The position numbers and the translations under genes were made by a program. A DNA stretch of 62,917 bases, the filler included, from Reticulomyxa filosa (taxonomy: Eukaryota; Protista; Foraminifera), in NCBI GenBank assembly GCA_000512085.1. It is 17 parts of 17 records of this genome, joined end to end, with 100 filler letters (N's around TTAATTAATTAA, not from the genome) between each part and the next. Parts side by side here need not be neighbours in the genome. Positions count along the whole stretch, not along the records: positions 26,675 to 33,558 come from ASPP01023814.1; 16 more parts are not named here. One strand, 5' to 3'. Positions 3 through 33,658 of the stretch are shown here, one piece after another. Below the pieces are notes generated by a model. That model made no database searches and had not been told where the DNA came from. It saw only the letters and a program-made list of their open reading frames with translations. Each line of letters starts with the position of its first letter. Position 1 is the stretch's first letter.

Positions 3-150
3 CCATTTAATACCACTGAAGAACTTTGGAACCAATTCGAAACAAAATGGGAAAAAATAGAAACAAAATATTTGTGAAACCTTAATAAAGTCGACACCAA
101 AGAGAATACAGGCAGTTAAAAAAGCCAAATTAGATTAAATACGTTGGTAA
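3..150 (+). pseudogene. Tc1/mariner transposase C-terminal remnant
   Basis: Manual translation gives PFNTTEELWNQFETKWEKIE, then a +1 frameshift, then QNICETLIKSTPKRIQAVKKAK. This matches the Tc1 C-terminal pattern ELW...W..I...C..LI.SMP.R...V.KAKG. A TIR-like end follows. Confidence 0.7.
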
Positions 151-224
151 ACTTGAATTAAATTTTAAAAAACAAATCTTATCATAATCAGGCACCACAA
201 AAAATCTTTTAAAGTAAATGAAAA

Positions 225-403
225 ATTAAAATTTTTGAAATAATTGTAAAGACTTAATAAAAAACCAAATGATATTTAAAAAATACACTATTCGTAGATA
301 TTTTTTAAAAAAATTTTGATTAAATGTTGTTTTTTCATTTAGAAACACAATAATCTCTATAATGTGGCATTTTAGGTGTCAACTTCTTTTTTATAATACT
401 GTA
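225..403 (-). mobile_element. Tc1/mariner-type terminal inverted repeat (right end, ...ACTG|TA)
   Basis: Ends ...TTTTAGGTGTCAACTTCTTTTTTATAATACTG-TA, directly downstream of the transposase remnant. Similar copies at 24704, 25340-25487, 25982-26140, 35615-35753 and 44700-44853. Confidence 0.7.
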
Positions 404-1235
404 CTTATCATTTATATCTTACTTCATCACTATGTTCACATAATGACATATCTTCGTTTATATTTGTTCCTCTTGTTGTTTGATGAGAAATTGGAAGTTA
501 TTTTTTGTATAACGAAACAATGGTCTTAATTGATGTTATATTAACTAATCCAACTGTAACTAATTTTTTCTTTTTAAAAGTTAATGTTGCAATTCACTTA
601 AACAAGGTATCGAGACGTAAAGTTAAAAAATGTTTATAAAATACGTAAGTAATAAATTTTGAAATTTGTTGTACTCGATAAAAAATACAAAACTATAATA
701 TTACTTATTTTCTGTGTTCTTCTTGGTTCGTTGTCATAGCTTGTATTATCGATGCTTCGAATATCTTGAGTACAACATTACTATGCATTGCTTTGAAATA
801 AATAACATGGACTGTTGCTCAGATTGTTTTTATTTGGCGTTTATTATTATTTGTGGATTTATAGTGAAGTTTTTACATTATTGATGTTATTTTGCGGTTA
901 TATGACAGTGTTATATGTTTTTTAAATATTAACATTGTATCGAAAAAAAAATTTGATCACTGACGCAACTTTCAGCAAAGTACATTTTTCAATTTGGAGT
1001 TACAAATATTTTATAGTGGACAAACAAAATACGTAATTGTAGAGATTCTATGTTGTGTATACATTGAAAATATTGAATTCGTTAAAAATTCAGAGTTGGT
1101 ACCGCAATGAGGGTATTGGAGTGAATTTTGTATTTTGTTGCTGACCACTGAACACGCAACAAAACAGACAAAGCCCCTTTTTGAAGATTAGGTAGAATGC
1201 AAAAAAATTTGTTTAAAGTGTTCTTCAAATAAAAA

Positions 1236-26140: not shown

Positions 26141-26674
26141 GATTTTTGAAAATTTTTGAGAAAAAGTTGACAATGTGACTGTGTCATAACAATGAAATTT
26201 GCAAAATTTTTTTTAGCATTTTCAAAAAGTGCTATATGCATATATTTTTTAAAAAAATTAGCATTCTTCGTTAAGTAGTTTTTGAGAAAATTCAATTTTT
26301 TGTTATCAAAAATTATTTTTGCAGAATTTAATGTTATTTTCAAAGTTTCTGCATTGTGAAAGCATGATTGTTTTTGACTACTATTTGTTTGCCTTTTTTT
26401 GTCCACTACAAGTTAATTCAAAAGCTTAATAACTGAAAATTTTTTGTGTTAAGATTTTTTTTAGTGAAAATTATCATTTGATTAAATCACTTTTTGCATT
26501 GTATAACGCTTGTATTCACTGTAATATTGATTTTATTAAGTTTGTGCATGTTCCTTTGTCAATTTTTTCACATTNNNNNNNNNNNNNNNNNNNNNNNNNN
26601 NNNNNNNNNNNNNNNNNNTTAATTAATTAANNNNNNNNNNNNNNNNNNNNNNNNNNNNNNNNNNNNNNNNNNNN

Positions 26675-29150
26675 GTATTATCAGATGATCCAGACACAAT
26701 TTTAGAACCATCAGGAGAAAATCCAACCGAACAAACATCACTTGAATGTCCGTTCAATAATCGAATTTGTCCTCCAGATGACACATCCCATATTTGAATG
26801 GTTCTATCATATGATCCGGATACAATTTTAGAACCATCAGGAGTGAATCCAACAGAACTAACAGAATTAGAATGTCCTTTCAATGATCTAATTTGTTTTC
26901 CAGATGATACATCCCATATTCGAATAGTATCATCATCTGATCCTGATACAATTTTAGAACCATCAAGAGAATATCTAACAAAACGAACAACATTTGAATG
27001 TCCTTTCAATGTTTGAATTAGTTTTCCAGATGATACATCCCATATTCGAATAGTGTCATCAGATGATCCTGAAACAATTTTAGAACCATCAGGAGAGAAC
27101 GCAACAGAATAACAAAATTTGAATGTCCTTCCAATGTCGAATTAGTTCTCCAGATGATACATCCCATATTCGAATAGTTTTATCTCTTGAGCCAGAAACA
27201 ATTTTAGAACCATCAGGAGAGAATCCGACCGAAGTAACAGACTTTGAGTGCCCGTTCCATGACCGAATAAGTTTTCCAGATGACACATCCCATATTTGAA
27301 TGGTTTTATCAAATGACCCTGATACAATTTTATACCCATCAAAAGAAAAATCAACAGAATTAAACCAATGTGAATGTCCTTCCAATGGTCGAAGTAGTTT
27401 TTCAGATGATACATTCCATATTCTAATGGTTTTATCCCGCGATGCTGATACAATTTTAGAACCATCAAGAGAGAATCCAACAACATAAATAAAATCTGAA
27501 TGTCCTTCCAACGTTTGAATTAGTTTTCCAGATGATACATCCCATATTCGAATGGTTTTATCCCATGACCCTGATACAATTTTAGAACCATCAGGAGAAA
27601 ACTCAACAGAAGCAATATAATTTGAATGTCCTTCCAATAATTGAACCTCTTCTCCAGATGATGCATCCCATATTCGAATAGTGTCATCATCTGATCCTGA
27701 TACAATTTTAGAACCATCAAGAGAAAGTTTAACAGAATTGATACACGCTGAATGTCCTTCCAACTTTTTCATTAGTTCTCCAGATGATACATCCCATATC
27801 CGAAGAGTTTTATCTAATGATCCTGATACAATTTTAGAACCATCAGGAAAAAAATCAACAGAATAAACAGTATCTGAATGTCCTTTCAATGATCGAATTA
27901 GTTCTCCAGATGATACATCCCATATTCGAATGGTTTTATCAAATGACCCTGATACAATTTTAGAACCATCAGGGGAAAATTTAATAGAAGAAATACTTTC
28001 TGAATGTCCATTCAATAATTGAATTAATTTTCCAGATGATACATCCCATATTCGAATGGTTTTATCACATGATCCTGATACAATTTTAGAACTATCAGGA
28101 GAAAATCCAACAAAAAGAACCCAACTTGAATGTCCTTCCAATGATCGAACTAGTTCTCCAGATGATACATCCCATATTCGAATGGTATTATCCTGTGATC
28201 CTGACACAACTTTAGAGCCATCAGAAAAAAAATTAACAGAACGAACAGCATCTGAATGTCCTTCCAATGATTGAGTTAGTTTTCGAAAAGGTACATTCCA
28301 TATTCTGATCGATTTATCAAATGATCCTGATACAATTTTAGAACCATCAGGAGAGAATCCAACAGAATTAACCCAATGTGAATGTCCTTCCAATTTTTGA
28401 ATAAGTTTTCTGGATGATACATCCCATATTTGAACAGTTTTATCTAATGATCCTGATACAATTTTAGAACCATCAGGTGAAAATTTAACGGAAGTAATGC
28501 CTTCTGAATGCCCCTCTAATTGCCGAATTAGTTCTCCAGATGATACATCCCATATTCGAATGGCTTTATCATATGATCCTGATACAATTTTAGAACCATC
28601 AGGAGAAAATCCAACAGAAGTAATAATATTTGAATGTCCTTTCAATAATTGAATTTGTTCTCCAGATGATACATCCCATATTCGAATGGTATTATCATAT
28701 GATCCGGATACAATTTTAGAACCATCAGGAAAAAATCCAACAAAAGAAACAAGCCTTGAATGTCCGTTTAATGATCGAATTAGTTCTCCAGATGATACAT
28801 CCCATATTCGAATGGTAGTATCAGATGATCCAGACACAATTTTGGAACCATCAGGAGAAAATCCAACAGAAGCAACAATACTTGAATGTTCTTTCAATAA
28901 TTGAATTTGCTCTCCAGATGATACATCCCATATTCGAATGGTTTTATCTTGTGATCCTGATACAATTTTAGAACCATCAGGAGAGAATCCAGCAGAATGA
29001 ATAATATTTGAATGCCCTTCCAATGATTTAATTTGTTTTCCAGATGATACATCCCATATCCGAACGGTTTTATCACGTGATCCCGATACAATTTTAAAAC
29101 CATCAGGAGAAAATCCAACAGAAGTGACACTATTTGAATGTCCTTGTAAA
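26675..29150 (-). repeat. Tandem 126-nt repeats encoding WD40 units (about 20 copies)
   Basis: GATACATCCCATATTCGAAT..GATACAATTTTAGAACCATCAGGA recurs every 126 nt. Confidence 0.97.
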
Positions 29151-32100
29151 TATGATTCACCAAAGTTGATAGAATTAGTAGATGCATTTGTAAAATTGGT
29201 GTTATTGAGACATGCTTGAAAGAAACTGACATGATCTAAAATGGCCCCTTTGAAAGTTGTTCCTTCCAGAAATGCTTTATCTAATATTGCATGTGGTATA
29301 CAAATATTATCCCAATTTTGATAACTCATACTAACATTCGCAGCATTAAGTATTGTTGCTGCATTTGCTGCTGCAATAGATATATTTGGATTATTTTTTG
29401 ATAGTTGTATGATTTGAAATAATTTTTGTATTAAATGTGAAAATTGTTGTGATTGATCATAAATCCTATCTGCTATAAATTGAATAATACTTAATTCTGT
29501 ATTTAATAATTTTTGATTAATGTATAATTGATTAATATACAATTGATTATTGTCATTCCATGATATAATATTGAATAAAATTTTTTGTGCAGCATAATAT
29601 TCTTGACATGATTTATGTAGAAATTGATATTTGTTATCACCAACTTTTCTTAATACATATTTGGCAATACTGTCTCCATTGAAATATCTTTGCCATTTAT
29701 CCACATCAACATTTTGGAAATCATTCACATCCACATCCATATTCAATTCAGTTATGATTTGTTTTTCTTCAAAAAACATATCAAAGCCTAAATCAAGACA
29801 ATATCGTTCGAGCACTGATTTAAGTTTATTGATGCTCATTTGTACTTTCAATTCTTTTAATTTCAAAATAATATTTTGTGCATGATTATTAATCCATTGA
29901 TCATTGAATACTTGATATACTTGTGCTCTTGAAATTCTTGTGTTTTTATCATAATTTTTTTGCAATAATGGCAAAACATCCAAAATGAGACGAAGAAGAA
30001 AAGGTTCTTCCACCATTTTTTGTAAATTTGGATAATTGTTCAATGTCTCTTCATATTGTTGTGATGTCCAATTGTTATTGTTGCTGTTATTATTATTATT
30101 TGTTTTCATTGCTGCAAACTTGTCAATATAATCACGCATCTGTATTTTTGTAAATGGCCACAAATACATCATTGATATATGATTTTGGTTATTATTACCA
30201 ATTAAGCACGTTTTAATATCTTCTTCTTTTAATGCACTACTTCGACAAGTAACAATCACTTTTGCATTCCATTGATTCAAATTAAAACGATCATAAAAAT
30301 ATGATTCATTTTCATTATGATTTTGACTATAAACATCAAATATTTCGTCAAATCCGTCCATAATAAATACAAATGGTACTTTTTCACGAATTGCGTCCAT
30401 ACTTTCTTTGTTAATATGTCTGCCTTGTAATGCTTGCAAAATGATATCTTTTTCATTTTGTTTATTATAAAATTTTGTAAATGAAATATAAACAGGAATA
30501 GCCTTTTTTGAATCAGACGCATAATTGTTCCATAAGGTTTTTTCTAAATAACGACAGAATATACTTTTTCCTGATCCTGATTTACCTTGAATTATCATTA
30601 CTTTATTTTCTTTTTGTTCATTTTTTTCTTCTTCTTCATTTAAAAATGTAATGACATGTTGATGGCAATTAAAAGTATTTTGTTTTTCATGATTGTCGCC
30701 ATCAGTATATGGATACTTATTGGCTTGTAATGGAATATATGTTTCGAGTGCTTGTGATGTGGCTATATCTTCTTTTAATTCTTGCTTCATGGACTCTTGT
30801 AATAACAATGCAAAATCATGACAACTTGCTGGATGTTTATCTCCAATGATATATTTTTTATAATATTCATATAAAATCACATACATTCCTTTTCCTTTTA
30901 CTTTCTCTGGAGTGAATTTACAAAGTTGTTCATATGTAAATTGTGCGATTTTTAATGGCACATTATTGTTAATTTCAATTTCACTTTTTTTATGTAATTG
31001 TGATGGTTTCAATATTCCAATATCTAAAGGTGGCTTATAACGAGTTGCCAATTTTTGTATTCCTTTATCATCAATCCATTCACATATAATATCATTCATT
31101 TTTGTTAATGCTTCATCACTTGCTTGCTTTAAATCTTCTTCTTCAGCATTCTTTGGTTGCCATGCTCTAATATGTTCATAAAATATATGACTTAATTTTG
31201 GATTCTCAATTATAGTATACCCTTCTAATGTTGTAAAATTTTTTAATGTCGCTTGCATTTCAATATATACATCATATTTTGGAACATATAATTTGATATT
31301 GTGGAATCGATGATGCGTTTTGGATTGTTTCTCAAAGAAATCTTTATCTTCAGATACAATTAAATGAAATTGTTCTGCTTTCTTCATTACAGTAACCGCT
31401 GTCTGTAATTTGACTTTATTTTCACAAAGAATAGTAAATCTTCCAACATCAAACACTTGATTATGATCTCCACCATAATCTGCTTTAATTTTCTCTGATA
31501 ATCTTTCATTTCCTTTCAAACTTGGTGGCCGCACAACTGTGATTTCATGTTTTTGTAATTCAGCAACTAAGTTGATGATATCATTACTCATCATTGCCTT
31601 TTCACTTCTGTCTCTTAAATCTTCAATACTTTCCGCGTGCTGTCTGATTTTATTTGCTTTCAATGTATATTTCAATCCTGATTGGATTGGATAACTACGT
31701 TGATAATTGTAGTCATTTTCATGTGACGATCCATCACTTGCATAAATGGAGTGCTCTGAATTAAAGAATAGTGCTTTAATGACGGATGTCAGTGTGAGTT
31801 GCTTACAAACAGGACAACTATAAGATATGTTGTTGGAATCCAATGAAATCTCACCAAATTCAAGATTCATCCATACAGAAATCTTTGCTTTGCCTGCTAA
31901 ACATTCTTTGTTTTTACAATAACCTTGCAAATTTATTCCTGCTTTAATCTCTCCAATTACTGATTTTTCTTCTTCTTTTTCCAATGTCTTTGACTGTTTT
32001 TTTTTTTCTTCTAATTCTTTATTGTCTTCTATCTGTTTTATATGTATTTGAAAAAAAAAAAAAAACGATCCAAATAAGTACTTTATCAAAGTATACCGGA

Positions 32101-32850
32101 TAAATATAGATTGTTATTTTTTGTTGTTGTTGTTGTTGTTGTAAATACTCGCTTATCTACCGTCTCAGTTTTTTCATCTTCTAAGGTGTCCTCTATTTTT
32201 TGATCAGCCACTTTCAATTGCAATGACCATTTACGACTGTCTTCATCGTATAGACTCTTCCAGATGTTTTTTAAATCCTCACCAGTTTTAATCACCACCT
32301 TTCCCTTCTTTTCGTCTCCCAAACTATATTCATTATATGCATTATATTCACCATTTTCATTATTTTGATAGTCACTTATTCCAGTCAATGCTTTGAATTC
32401 TTGCAAATGCTTTCCCCAATCTTCTTTTTCTAATTCTTGGTAAAAACGTGGTTCATTCGAATTCTTTGGACACCACGTAGTTCTTTTTCCTTCACTGTCT
32501 TCGCTTATTATTACTATGCACCGCTATTTAATTTTTTTTTAATAAAGTGTATGTATATCTTTTTTTTTTTTTTTTTTTTCTTAGATATATGTAGTGACCA
32601 TCTTAAATGTATAGTATCGCGCTTGTTTGCTTTGAATAAGTTCGTTCCAAACATGCATGAAATCATTGCCGTCATTAATTTGAGCATTGTTGCTTTTTTT
32701 TTTTACAAAAAGAAAGGATGACATATCTGTCAAATTCAATCCATGTTTGGTTGCTTGTTGCAATAATTTCCAATTCTCTTCTTTGGAAAGTTCATCTGCC
32801 ATTTGCCCACTGCCAGGCTTGAACGTTACCGGTTCATCATCAGAAAGCTT
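26675..32850 (-). CDS. NLR-like STAND protein: N-terminal modules, Zn-binding domain, RelA/SpoT-like nucleotidyltransferase, NACHT, pentapeptide repeats, about 20 WD40 repeats (3'-truncated)
   Basis: 1666-aa ORF 27089-32089 plus upstream exons and a frameshifted continuation. Walker A IQGKSGSGKS, Walker B FVFIMDGFDE, VIVTCR sensor, PF motif (EEPFLL), YQFLHKSCQEYYAA (WHD), AANAATILN + pentapeptide repeats, then GHS..V.SV.FSPDGSKIVSGS.D.TIRIWD repeats. Confidence 0.93.
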
Positions 32851-33658
32851 AATTAATACGTACTTTTCCTTTTTTTTTTTTTTTTGGCTAAATCCAGTTT
32901 TTTTTTTTTAAAATAAACAAACCATTTTGGGTTTTTTCGCTGTTACGCTTTTTTTTCTTATTAGTGAGTGTAGTATGTGCTTAATTATAGCAAAAAAAAA
33001 AAAAAAGCGATGATGTAAAATTTTTTTTGTTTGAGGTTTGTACTCCCGCCCCCTCTGTGACAGGTTTTTTTAAAAAAAAGTTGATGTGACAATTGAAATG
33101 AAAATAAACTTTATTTTGTTTACAATTTTGAAACGATTTTGTTTGCAAAGGCAAAAAAAAACGCTCTTTGCTGTTTTTCTCTCTTTCCTTGCTTTCTTAA
33201 AACATTGAAAAAAAGGACACTTTTTCATTTGTTCAAAAAAAAAAAATGCAACTGCTTACTATTTCTTTCTATCTATATTGTTAAGACAATTTGAAGAAGA
33301 AGATGCTGTTGCATTTTTGCAACTACAAAAAAAAAATTCTTTTAAAAACACTCAGCACAAGCATATTTCTGTTTCATTCCAAAACCTTCTATCACCAAGT
33401 GAATCTCTTTCATTTTTACGCCTGTTTCTTTCGTCTCCTTTTGATGATATCTCTACCTCCATATTCCACCAGCTTTCTTTCCTAAGCTCTTCAATTCGGA
33501 TTTTTGGGATGACAGAGATCAGATTTTTAATTCAATCAATATTACAACCTACAACCCCNNNNNNNNNNNNNNNNNNNNNNNNNNNNNNNNNNNNNNNNNN
33601 NNTTAATTAATTAANNNNNNNNNNNNNNNNNNNNNNNNNNNNNNNNNNNNNNNNNNNN

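Follow-up and report, generated by a model that had tools for sequence, protein, structure and literature searches.

A RelA/SpoT-type synthetase domain in a NACHT-WD40 receptor family of the foraminiferan Reticulomyxa filosa: a candidate nucleotide-based effector

Alarmone toxins and RelA_SpoT receptors

RelA/SpoT-type (RSH) enzymes are viewed as signalling enzymes of bacteria and plastids and, lately, as bacterial toxins and anti-phage effectors. The best fold match to the domain discussed here is Tas1/Apk1, a (pp)pApp-synthetase type VI effector of Pseudomonas aeruginosa (PDB 6OX6). Synthesis of (pp)pApp and depletion of ATP are known from both Tas1 and FaRel; CapRel and FaRel2 pyrophosphorylate tRNA (10.1101/2021.04.30.441581; PMC7229694). 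Tas1 is specific for adenine nucleotides (10.1101/2021.04.30.441581), and SaEAS, a Tas1-related exported enzyme, prefers guanine acceptors (PMC12691689). The 2,959 Tas1/Apk1 homologues of a 2025 survey are described as bacterial, and its main text makes no mention of eukaryotes (PMC12691689). On the receptor side, Dyrka et al. described in 2014 fungal NLRs that carry RelA_SpoT at the N-terminus (RelA_SpoT-NACHT-WD40), Gaeumannomyces graminis being one of the species concerned (PMC4986451), and 17 RelA_SpoT NLRs were listed for Sordariales in 2025 (PMC12258605), which documents the statement, made in an earlier sequence-only reading of our locus, that RelA_SpoT is a rare effector of fungal NLRs. 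The architecture is already known from fungi, where it has been on record from 2014 on. Receptors of this kind have so far been reported in fungi only, and the searchable literature mentions RSH-NLR fusions neither for Reticulomyxa nor for any other protist. To our knowledge, none of the RSH-bearing NLRs listed from fungi over these years has been studied experimentally.

Three things appear to be new here: that the domain is of a Tas1-like subtype, that it has expanded in a rhizarian, and that a metagenomic protein contains a homologous RSH-NACHT module. By described architecture, the R. filosa protein resembles the fungal receptors in combining an RSH effector, a NACHT module and a conserved WD40 array with hypervariable sites. 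It differs in its rhizarian host, in an additional four-cysteine (Cys4) beta domain in front and in a pentapeptide stretch before the WD40 array; the domain is rare in fungal NLRs, whereas R. filosa has about 46 copies. A protein search with the RSH-NACHT alignment returned eight proteins, with no fungal RSH-NLR among them. With Tas1, the R. filosa domain shares the K..R..EK, D..R, KD, E.Q and H..YE..R motifs, including the motif of the C-terminal helix, which is missing from housekeeping SAS enzymes. Unlike Tas1, it carries no PAAR, eCIS or signal-peptide delivery module (Pfam and the model place no PAAR, eCIS or signal domain beside it on this ORF) and is fused to NACHT-WD40 in a eukaryote; furthermore, the G-loop GY of Tas1 is HH in this copy, and identity is only about 20%. 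The toxSAS enzymes (FaRel, FaRel2, PhRel2, CapRel) share the fold as well, the part that matches in CapRel being the synthetase fold alone, and no sequence-level match to the FaRel, FaRel2, PhRel2 or CapRel subfamilies was found. Their concept is the one proposed below, an RSH enzyme that would stay off until an invader is sensed and would then arrest the cell. Control, on the other hand, would lie with a fused STAND NTPase and repeat sensor in R. filosa and lies with an antitoxin or pseudo-ZFD lid in toxSAS.

The locus and its RSH domain

The window, that is, the whole stretch of DNA analysed (62,917 nucleotides, 17 parts of the R. filosa genome joined by filler), contains the ORF whose features are collected in Table 1. 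It encodes, in order, the Cys4 beta domain, the RSH domain, a helical linker, the NACHT module, pentapeptide repeats and the WD40 array. The ORF listing of the 6.9-kb piece that holds it shows no candidate immunity gene.

Table 1. Features of the R. filosa locus; positions are those of the window, residues those of the ORF
Feature	Position	Residues	Strand	Basis
ORF, 1666 codons	27089-32089	1666 aa	-	ORF listing
71-nt GT-AG intron of public gene model P0002	32026-32096		-	P0002 protein against DNA
N-terminal all-beta domain, four-Cys (CxxxxC...CPxC) putative zinc site	31643-31939	51-149	-	AF2 model, paralogue conservation
RSH synthetase-fold domain, Tas1/Apk1-like	31043-31630	154-349	-	Pfam, PDB and profile searches, model, fold search
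RSH motif LKGNERLSEKIKADYGG	31469-31519	191-207	-	exact string match
RSH motif VFDVGRFTILC	31424-31456	212-222	-	exact string match
RSH motif VSEDKDFF		245-252	-	exact string match
RSH motif KTHHRFHNIKL		257-267	-	exact string match
RSH motif VYIEMQ		274-279	-	exact string match
RSH motif SHIFYEHIR	31166-31192	300-308	-	exact string match
Helical linker, RSH to NACHT	30743-31042	350-449	-	helices at model residues 306-405
NACHT NTPase (NOD) module	29567-30601	about 497-841	-	Pfam NACHT, Walker motifs
Short pentapeptide-repeat stretch, NACHT to WD40	29141-29338	about 918-983	-	Pfam, marginal
WD40 array, 126-bp tandem unit, 19.6 copies	26678-29145		-	TRF, Pfam WD40
Two single-base frame shifts in one WD40 repeat	27105-27135		-	read directly from sequence

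The sequence-only reading had placed a RelA/SpoT synthetase fold ahead of a NACHT-WD40 receptor. The six motif strings on which it drew all lie inside this ORF, on the minus strand at 31166-31519; the interval it gave, 31160-31540, holds the catalytic core and falls short of the whole domain (about 31043-31630). Pfam domain calls confirm that the RSH domain adjoins a NACHT-WD40 receptor, and Foldseek and VIA-align bear out the fold, the AlphaFold (AF2) model (pLDDT 82.6) predicting, unambiguously, the alpha/beta nucleotidyltransferase fold of RelA/SpoT. All of the top 39 Foldseek matches are RSH synthetases, with Tas1 first (E 9.5e-9), which answers the comparison with RelP, RelQ and Tas1 that had been proposed, the ranking being Tas1, then RelQ, CapRel and RelP. 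VIA-align superposes the model on Tas1 with Z 12.7 and an rmsd of 3.1 Å over 164 residues at 20% identity, on RelQ with Z 11.6 and on CapRel (chain residues 41-247) with Z 11.5 and 3.0 Å over 174 aa, the longest alignment; small alarmone synthetases and toxSAS lie at Z 10.6-12.7, generic nucleotidyltransferases at 7-8. Since Z scores of 12.7, 11.6 and 11.5 do not separate the Tas1, RelQ and CapRel types, the acceptor is assigned below from sequence kinship. A homodimer prediction for the RSH domain scored 0.01 and gave no answer, so that it counts as evidence neither way.

In sequence searches, this copy by itself stays below the Pfam threshold for RelA_SpoT (PF04607; 17.3-17.8 bits, E 0.0058, gathering cut-off 27 bits), and no NCBIfam model matches the domain. 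The same Pfam family, however, matches 31 of the 32 paralogue domains at E<=1 (best E 3.8e-7), and paralogue P0001, 77% identical to this copy, exceeds the 27-bit cut-off with 30.2 bits. Tas1 is the sole PDB match both of the single sequence (E 0.027) and of the paralogue profile (E 0.0046). When the profile is extended by 17 metagenomic relatives, Tas1 is matched over the whole domain at E 1.1e-30, YwaC following at 2e-9. The nearest bacterial relatives bear eCIS-core delivery domains, and hhalign aligns the RSH domain with the C-terminal domain of an eCIS-core toxin at 97% probability (E 9.6e-11). As judged from these profiles, the RSH domain is specifically closest to the secreted (pp)pApp-synthetase toxins of the Tas1/Apk1 type, not to housekeeping RelP/RelQ. 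A chance resemblance to RelA/SpoT motifs is ruled out by the fold and profile evidence.

The active site is largely retained. K192, R196 and K200 are putative ATP-phosphate contacts, D214 and R217 form the putative Mg site, and further key residues are K249, the G-loop pair H259-H260, E277, Q279, H301, Y304 and R308; of these, K192, R196, K200, D214, R217, E277 and Q279 align with Tas1, YwaC and YjbM. In domain numbering, K62, R66, K70, D84, R87, E147, Q149, Y174 and R178 are invariant across foraminiferal and bacterial sequences, and each of the nine is either invariant or conserved to at least 90% among the 42 aligned paralogues. Over these 42 copies, on which conservation was counted (G-loop and Pfam counts refer to 32 paralogue domains), the ATP-binding K/R/K, the Mg-binding Asp, the Glu-x-Gln and the His..Tyr..Arg are invariant or nearly so, in keeping with the earlier remark that both putative catalytic acids (D, E) are present, and the catalytic motifs are conserved also in distant bacterial toxin relatives. 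The catalytic core has a dN/dS of 0.08-0.20 against paralogues and is conserved more strongly than any other stretch of the N-terminal region; the helical linker shows less conservation (dN/dS 0.32-0.48). The active-site residues are clearly under purifying selection.

The G-loop, on the other hand, is altered, as had been read from the sequence: a gapless alignment sets THHRFH here against QGYRDY, THYRDY and TYYRDY in the closest relatives, so that the Tyr that stacks on the acceptor base is His260 and the Asp after it is Phe. His is found in most paralogues and Tyr (THYR) in 4 of the 32 aligned domains. As the His is conserved and alternates only with Tyr, a retained base-contacting role is suggested. 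Substitution of the G-loop Tyr by Ala inactivates FaRel2 (Y128A; 10.1101/2021.04.30.441581) and merely compromises FaRel (Y175A), which is still toxic if overexpressed (PMC7229694).

In an AF2 model covering 447 N-terminal aa, beta strands extend over model residues 7-105, forming a Cys4 domain that lies consistently upstream of the RSH domain and has been duplicated together with it, as a unit, in P0001. Its C14 and C19 are invariant in 42 paralogues, and C48, P49 and C51 nearly so. It matches no Pfam family, and the fold search with the 447-aa model gave a match list filled by RSH proteins. A language-model search with it returned only unnamed, rotifer-dominated clusters, which we treat as leads.

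Receptor part and family

The NACHT module (Pfam E 8.1e-10; 39.2 bits, cut-off 26.7) has a Walker A motif GKSGSGKS at aa 502-509 and a Walker B motif FVFIMDGFDE at aa 573-582, and shares up to 38% identity with bacterial MAG loci. The pentapeptide stretch that follows is marginal, with 20.3 bits against a cut-off of 20.2 for Pfam Pentapeptide and a sub-threshold Pentapeptide_4 match (E 1e-4). The WD40 array begins at aa 983, Pfam WD40 finding 16 stretches, and its tandem unit shows 81% matches and no indels (TRF). At least 19 repeats are present: the main ORF holds 16, a frameshifted one comes next, and from there to the edge of the piece the array runs for two and a half units or more. The variable WD40 repeats of the sequence-only reading are indeed near-identical units that differ at few places: per-position entropy reaches 2-3.2 bits at the six hypervariable positions 4, 5, 7, 10, 23 and 40 and stays at or below 1.6 bits over the nearly invariant remainder. 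The same focused variation has been described for fungal NLR repeats (PMC4986451).

Counting paralogues, as had been suggested, gives about 46 R. filosa proteins with a complete or nearly complete domain, and additional fragments. Three paralogue gene models taken from this assembly do not translate straight through and are therefore interrupted, presumably by introns. Bacterial contamination of the assembly was considered and rejected, the piece being low in GC, in line with the R. filosa annotation, and two of the three fetched paralogue models adjoining eukaryote-type genes (MRG, Disintegrin/WW). A search of public sequencing runs found a 'synthetic metagenome' study alone and no RNA run.

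Proposed function, rival readings and the origin of the module

We propose that the RSH-NACHT-WD40 protein is likely to be a nucleotide-based immune or death effector, as its domain make-up suggests. The hypervariable WD40 propellers would bind a non-self or danger ligand, upon which the NACHT module would oligomerise and switch on or unmask the N-terminal RSH domain, which would then move pyrophosphate from ATP onto an acceptor's 3'-OH group. With an adenine nucleotide as acceptor, (pp)pApp would be formed, the ATP pool would run down and the cytoplasm concerned would be arrested or killed, in effect an abortive response of an amoeboid, syncytial cell that feeds on bacteria. On balance, we favour the view that the gene is one copy of a large NLR-like STAND family with an RSH effector acting in this way. 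Because the RSH domain groups with the Tas1/Apk1 toxins, an adenine nucleotide is the most likely acceptor, and this kinship favours an adenine-nucleotide acceptor with ATP depletion over (p)ppGpp, though we would put (pp)pApp chemistry itself at a little short of an even chance. With 46 near-full natural variants, a selected active site and an ATP-depleting toxin as the closest solved relative, the family makes it testable whether eukaryotic NLRs can kill or arrest by alarmone chemistry, and with which acceptor. Should the (pp)pApp reading be true, eukaryotes would have their first adenosine-alarmone immune effector, a link between NLR immunity, toxSAS defence and the polymorphic toxins of bacteria.

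Other chemistries have to be weighed against this proposal. The RSH domain could be a tRNA pyrophosphokinase of the CapRel/FaRel2/PhRel2 type, which would modify the 3'-CCA end and block aminoacylation and translation with no free alarmones. CapRel matches the model as well as RelQ does, the altered G-loop suggests a non-canonical acceptor, the CCA end is universal, so that the chemistry would work in a eukaryote, and toxSAS enzymes of the CapRel/FaRel2 type act in anti-phage defence (10.1101/2021.04.30.441581); we nevertheless regard a tRNA acceptor as unlikely, given that the paralogue profile detects only Tas1, that no CapRel entry appears among the PDB matches of the RSH profiles even at E 10 and that the nearest relatives are eCIS-linked toxin domains grouping with Tas1. 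Synthesis of canonical (p)ppGpp directed at bacterial prey, symbionts or organelles would fit the presence of an RSH fold and the fact that Reticulomyxa feeds on bacteria. Manipulation of prokaryotic signalling was suggested by Dyrka et al. for the fungal RelA_SpoT NLRs (PMC4986451), and the guanine preference of SaEAS points the same way (PMC12691689). The domain, however, is intracellular, fused to a receptor and without a delivery domain, its closest characterised relative is adenine-specific and its G-loop is altered, all of which leaves this reading very improbable. We give an equally slim chance to an acceptor other than an adenine or guanine nucleotide or the tRNA CCA end. The loss of the stacking Tyr to His and of the next Asp to Phe, together with the sub-threshold Pfam score of this copy and the degenerate motif residues in the first of the two tandem units of P0001, could on the other hand mean that the domain is a catalytically dead pseudo-enzyme, retained in the role of adaptor, as a sensor of nucleotides or as a platform on which another effector oligomerises. 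This is quite unlikely in our view, as the phosphate-binding, Mg-binding and catalytic residues are near-invariant and common to active toxins, purifying selection acts most strongly on the catalytic core, and the G-loop His is itself conserved.

It is also conceivable, and compatible with every one of these readings, that the family is functional and this one locus is dead or mis-assembled. Two 1-nt frame shifts within a single WD40 repeat cause the stop at 27089-27091, beyond which the array resumes in another frame (downstream ORF 26623-27009), and the piece, at only 6884 bp, cuts the gene. At the 5' end, 14 of 18 inspected paralogue models have a start Met 22-77 aa ahead of the GINLQGYC motif; in this copy, no in-frame ATG lies in the 22-77-aa zone before the conserved N-terminus, above the beta domain. 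The public gene model P0002 bridges this end by an intron that splices a non-conserved upstream exon onto the conserved coding region, and its upstream 312 aa have a counterpart in no paralogue. The ORF is otherwise intact, however, with every motif present, both shifts fall in short runs of T in what is a draft assembly, and dN/dS against paralogues is low; we thus hold a dead or faulty copy to be possible but doubtful.

Our proposal also touches on where the module came from. The RSH domain of a metagenomic Ank-RSH-NACHT protein (P0129), together with P0103 and P0105, is sister to the R. filosa clade (support 92/94). The C-terminal part of the linker and the NACHT module are 35% identical between P0129 and R. 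filosa over 471 aa, and the RSH-NACHT module is therefore homologous as a whole. P0129 differs from this R. filosa protein in its N-terminal ankyrin repeats, in the lack of WD40 repeats and in having retained Tyr in the G-loop. It is probably bacterial, since its ORF is intron-less and its contig carries transposase genes on either side; a word-indexed protein search for named relatives returned P0129 itself only. That a eukaryote employs a Tas1-type (pp)pApp synthetase as an NLR executioner, with an RSH-NACHT module derived from or shared with protist-associated bacteria, is put forward tentatively, as a possibility we would not yet lean on. Finding the module in a protein that is probably bacterial has a bearing on the way in which the NLR repertoires of eukaryotes came together. 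The nearest bacterial NACHT-WD40 relative, L006, has no RSH domain in its N-terminal 1082 aa. NACHT-WD40 relatives are present in Mycoavidus, Legionellales and other host-associated bacteria, and these bear on the assembly of NLR repertoires too.

An RSH domain ahead of a NACHT-WD40 receptor

The contig at 26675-33558 (6884 bp, ~30% G+C) carries a single long open reading frame, and its public protein model, P0002, is annotated as 'NB-ARC domain-containing protein, partial' from Reticulomyxa filosa, a naked foraminifer of fresh water (assembly GCA_000512085.1). Every motif string cited in the sequence-only reading lies where it had been placed, and the resulting architecture is an N-terminal RelA/SpoT homologue (RSH) domain fused to NACHT and WD40 repeats. 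Three parts can be distinguished in the N-terminal 447 residues by an AlphaFold prediction that drew on 42 paralogues (pLDDT 81.7, pTM 0.71).

Features of the receptor gene and its product
Feature	Location	Strand	Basis and details
Long ORF	27089..32089	minus	1666 codons
RSH catalytic core	31166-31519		motif strings
RelA_SpoT	ORF aa 192-279		Pfam, E 0.0058, 17.3 bits; sub-threshold (cut-off 27)
NACHT	ORF aa 497-631		Pfam, 39.2 bits
Pentapeptide stretch	ORF aa 918-983		Pfam, marginal
WD40	16 repeats in ORF		Pfam
WD40 tandem array	26678-29145		126-bp unit, 19.6 copies, 81% matches, no indels
All-beta domain	model residues 7-105		AlphaFold 447-aa model; four conserved Cys
RSH domain, alpha/beta	model residues 110-305		AlphaFold 447-aa model
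Helical linker	model residues 306-405		AlphaFold 447-aa model
Frame slips (two)	~27105-27135	minus	single bases, each in a short T run, same WD40 repeat
GT-AG intron	32026-32096	minus	71 nt; P0002 model; leads to upstream exons

The RSH assignment is real and is carried by three lines of evidence, namely sequence, fold and distant relatives. Pfam RelA_SpoT matches 31 of 32 paralogue domains (best E 3.8e-7), and the paralogue P0001, which shares 77% identity with the window copy, exceeds the curated cut-off at 30.2 bits. Among all PDB sequences the only match is Tas1 (6OX6), a (pp)pApp-synthetase type VI effector, at E 0.027 with the single sequence and 0.0046 with the paralogue profile. For the RSH-domain model (pLDDT 82.6), RSH synthetases occupy Foldseek places 1-39, Tas1 being first at E 9.5e-9. 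VIA-align Z is 12.7 for Tas1 (rmsd 3.1 Å, 164 aa), 11.6 for RelQ, 11.5 for CapRel, 11.2 for an exported Streptomyces synthetase, 10.9 for RelP, ~8 for long Rel/RelA/SpoT and 7-8 for unrelated nucleotidyltransferases (Cid1, cGAS). The RelA/SpoT fold proposed from sequence thus stands.

A profile search that went exhaustively through 1.8 billion representatives matched 102 proteins. The strong matches whose source was checked comprise 10 R. filosa proteins and 3 metagenomic or environmental sequences; the weaker ones are metagenomic or bacterial, several carrying an eCIS-core toxin-delivery domain and several matching RelA_SpoT themselves. K62, R66, K70, D84, R87, E147, Q149, Y174 and R178 in domain numbering (K192, R196, K200, D214, R217, E277, Q279, Y304 and R308 in the ORF) are invariant in the joint alignment with these relatives. 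The joint profile matches Tas1 over the whole domain at E 1.1e-30, with YwaC (2e-9), YjbM and RelSeq far behind, and hhalign aligns the foraminiferal profile with the C-terminal domain of an eCIS toxin (probability 97%). The domain is thus kin to Tas1-type toxins.

Close relatives of the foraminiferal domain (P0083, P0062 and P0066; E 6e-26 to 6e-99) lie on short environmental contigs, one of which belongs to a WGS set whose accession prefix is AAFX01; environmental samples therefore contain Reticulomyxa-like organisms with this RSH family.

Active-site constraint and the likely acceptor

The catalytic residues do not vary freely among paralogues, which would have spoken against the sequence-only reading: those of the active site are invariant or at least 90% conserved in 42 paralogues. 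Per-column conservation is 0.86-0.90 in the catalytic core, the highest in the N-terminal region, versus 0.6-0.75 elsewhere. Pairwise Nei-Gojobori dN/dS among four copies is 0.08-0.20 in the core, 0.19-0.39 in the beta domain and 0.32-0.48 in the helical linker, values that are approximate because the underlying dS (0.5-2.8) is partly saturated. The RSH domain is under purifying selection.

By comparison with STAND/NLR proteins, the WD40 propellers would bind a ligand and NACHT would exchange nucleotide and then oligomerize, activating or unmasking the N-terminal enzyme, which, as in Tas1 and the toxSAS toxins, would move pyrophosphate from ATP to an acceptor 3'-OH. Adenine nucleotides are the most likely acceptor because of the kinship to Tas1, with ATP depletion as the probable consequence; tRNA is the main alternative. 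The earlier proposal of a nucleotide product is thereby narrowed towards adenine; its RSH fold, NACHT-WD40 fusion and catalytic Asp and Glu hold. The G-loop bears on both the acceptor and activity. It reads G-Y-R-D in relatives but H-H-R-F in the R. filosa family, a replacement of GY by HH already noticed from sequence and now borne out by comparison with the three nearest relatives (QGYRDY, THYRDY, TYYRDY), whose alignment needs no gaps and so fixes the register; 4 of 32 aligned paralogue domains keep H-Y. FaRel2 loses its activity when the equivalent tyrosine, which stacks on the acceptor, is changed to alanine (Y128A; 10.1101/2021.04.30.441581); Y175A merely weakens FaRel (PMC7229694). The histidine could still stack on a base, and the change may point to another acceptor or to lower activity. 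The domain could even be a dead enzyme, a reading to be weighed against the purifying selection on it.

P0001 (RFI_08856) has two tandem Cys4-beta and RSH units (residues 26-325 and 392-707) before one NACHT; in its first RSH copy the KD lysine is Asn, H..Y..R is N..Y..K and the G-loop is HD.

Paralogues, bacterial relatives and the window copy

A search with residues 40-470 recovers P0002 together with another 55 R. filosa proteins; identity is 51-74% for those covered almost in full, and the family has expanded to about 46 copies. P0049 ('vcbs repeat-containing') has its RSH domain near the C-terminus (residues 694-912) and no NACHT match; either its architecture departs from that of the family or the gene model has been fused or mis-called. 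Beside the paralogue P0044 lies another NACHT gene (L005:12538-18417, 1905 aa) with HEAT/ARM-type repeats; thus other NLR-like architectures occur near the RSH family.

Maximum-likelihood analysis unites the R. filosa RSH domains in a single clade (support 100/99), whose sister group (92/94) consists of three metagenomic sequences associated with Ank, TPR or NACHT domains. P0129 (L001:2745-6257, metagenome contig ERZ25070786) is an intron-less Ank-RSH-NACHT gene, homologous to the window protein in the RSH region and sharing 35% identity with it across 471 aa of linker and NACHT; the RSH-NACHT module therefore predates the foraminiferal expansion. Its contig, with YhgA-like and DDE transposase genes, is probably bacterial, and the G+C contrast (~50-53% in the gene, ~36% in the flanks holding those genes) suggests a recently moved gene. 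At L002:508-3222, an Ank-NACHT gene comes directly after P0103 (RSH and TPR), so that RSH and NACHT are neighbours here rather than fused.

When bacterial genomes were scanned with the module, related NACHT-WD40 loci turned up in a MAG of Bacteroidota (38% identity) and in bacteria that live with hosts, namely Mycoavidus cysteinexigens and MAGs of Legionellales, Francisellaceae and Coxiellaceae. The Bacteroidota ORF (L006:1755-8888, 2377 aa) has 16 WD40 repeats and no RSH domain in its N-terminal region; the Mycoavidus locus (L007, 3150-8831) has ARM-like repeats and no Pfam RelA_SpoT match. In these nearest chassis relatives, N-terminal regions of other kinds (TPR, ARM-like) replace RSH.

In the window's WD40 array, entropy over 18 repeats reaches 2-3.2 bits at positions 4, 5, 7, 10, 23 and 40, most others being invariant, so the 'variable WD40s' of the sequence-only reading amount to six positions per near-identical repeat. 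Fungal NLR repeats show the same pattern (PMC4986451). Near-identity at DNA level together with variation at so few positions suggests that, like fungal NWD genes, the array undergoes concerted evolution combined with diversifying selection. The two frame slips produce the stop at 27089, past which the repeats run on in a different frame as far as the contig edge (26675). No in-frame ATG precedes the conserved beta domain in this copy, and 14 of 18 paralogue models inspected begin 22-77 residues ahead of it. The P0002 5' end is doubtful because its upstream 312 aa have no counterpart in any paralogue and no Pfam match; its several upstream exons (32100-33558, minus) include low-complexity poly-Lys translations of A-rich tracts. 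Either sequencing error or pseudogenization may account for the defects.

Fungal precedents and further leads

A 2014 study (PMC4986451) had already described fungal NLRs with an N-terminal RelA_SpoT domain, RelA_SpoT-NACHT-WD40 among them, and the architecture class is therefore a known one; in fungi the domain is still regarded as a rare canonical effector, with 17 NLRs across Sordariales (PMC12258605). The searchable literature yielded nothing linking Reticulomyxa or other protists to RSH-NLR proteins. The R. filosa family is notable for its Tas1-like subtype, about 46 copies, extra Cys4 beta domain and His G-loop, and for an RSH-NACHT module that also occurs in a probably bacterial protein. 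In the ESM Atlas, clusters that resemble the RSH model (mac09cdde4d85) in shape include a TPR-fused one and unnamed ones of Nucleocytoviricota, tailed-phage and diatom origin, and may serve as leads towards RSH-like effectors outside bacteria.
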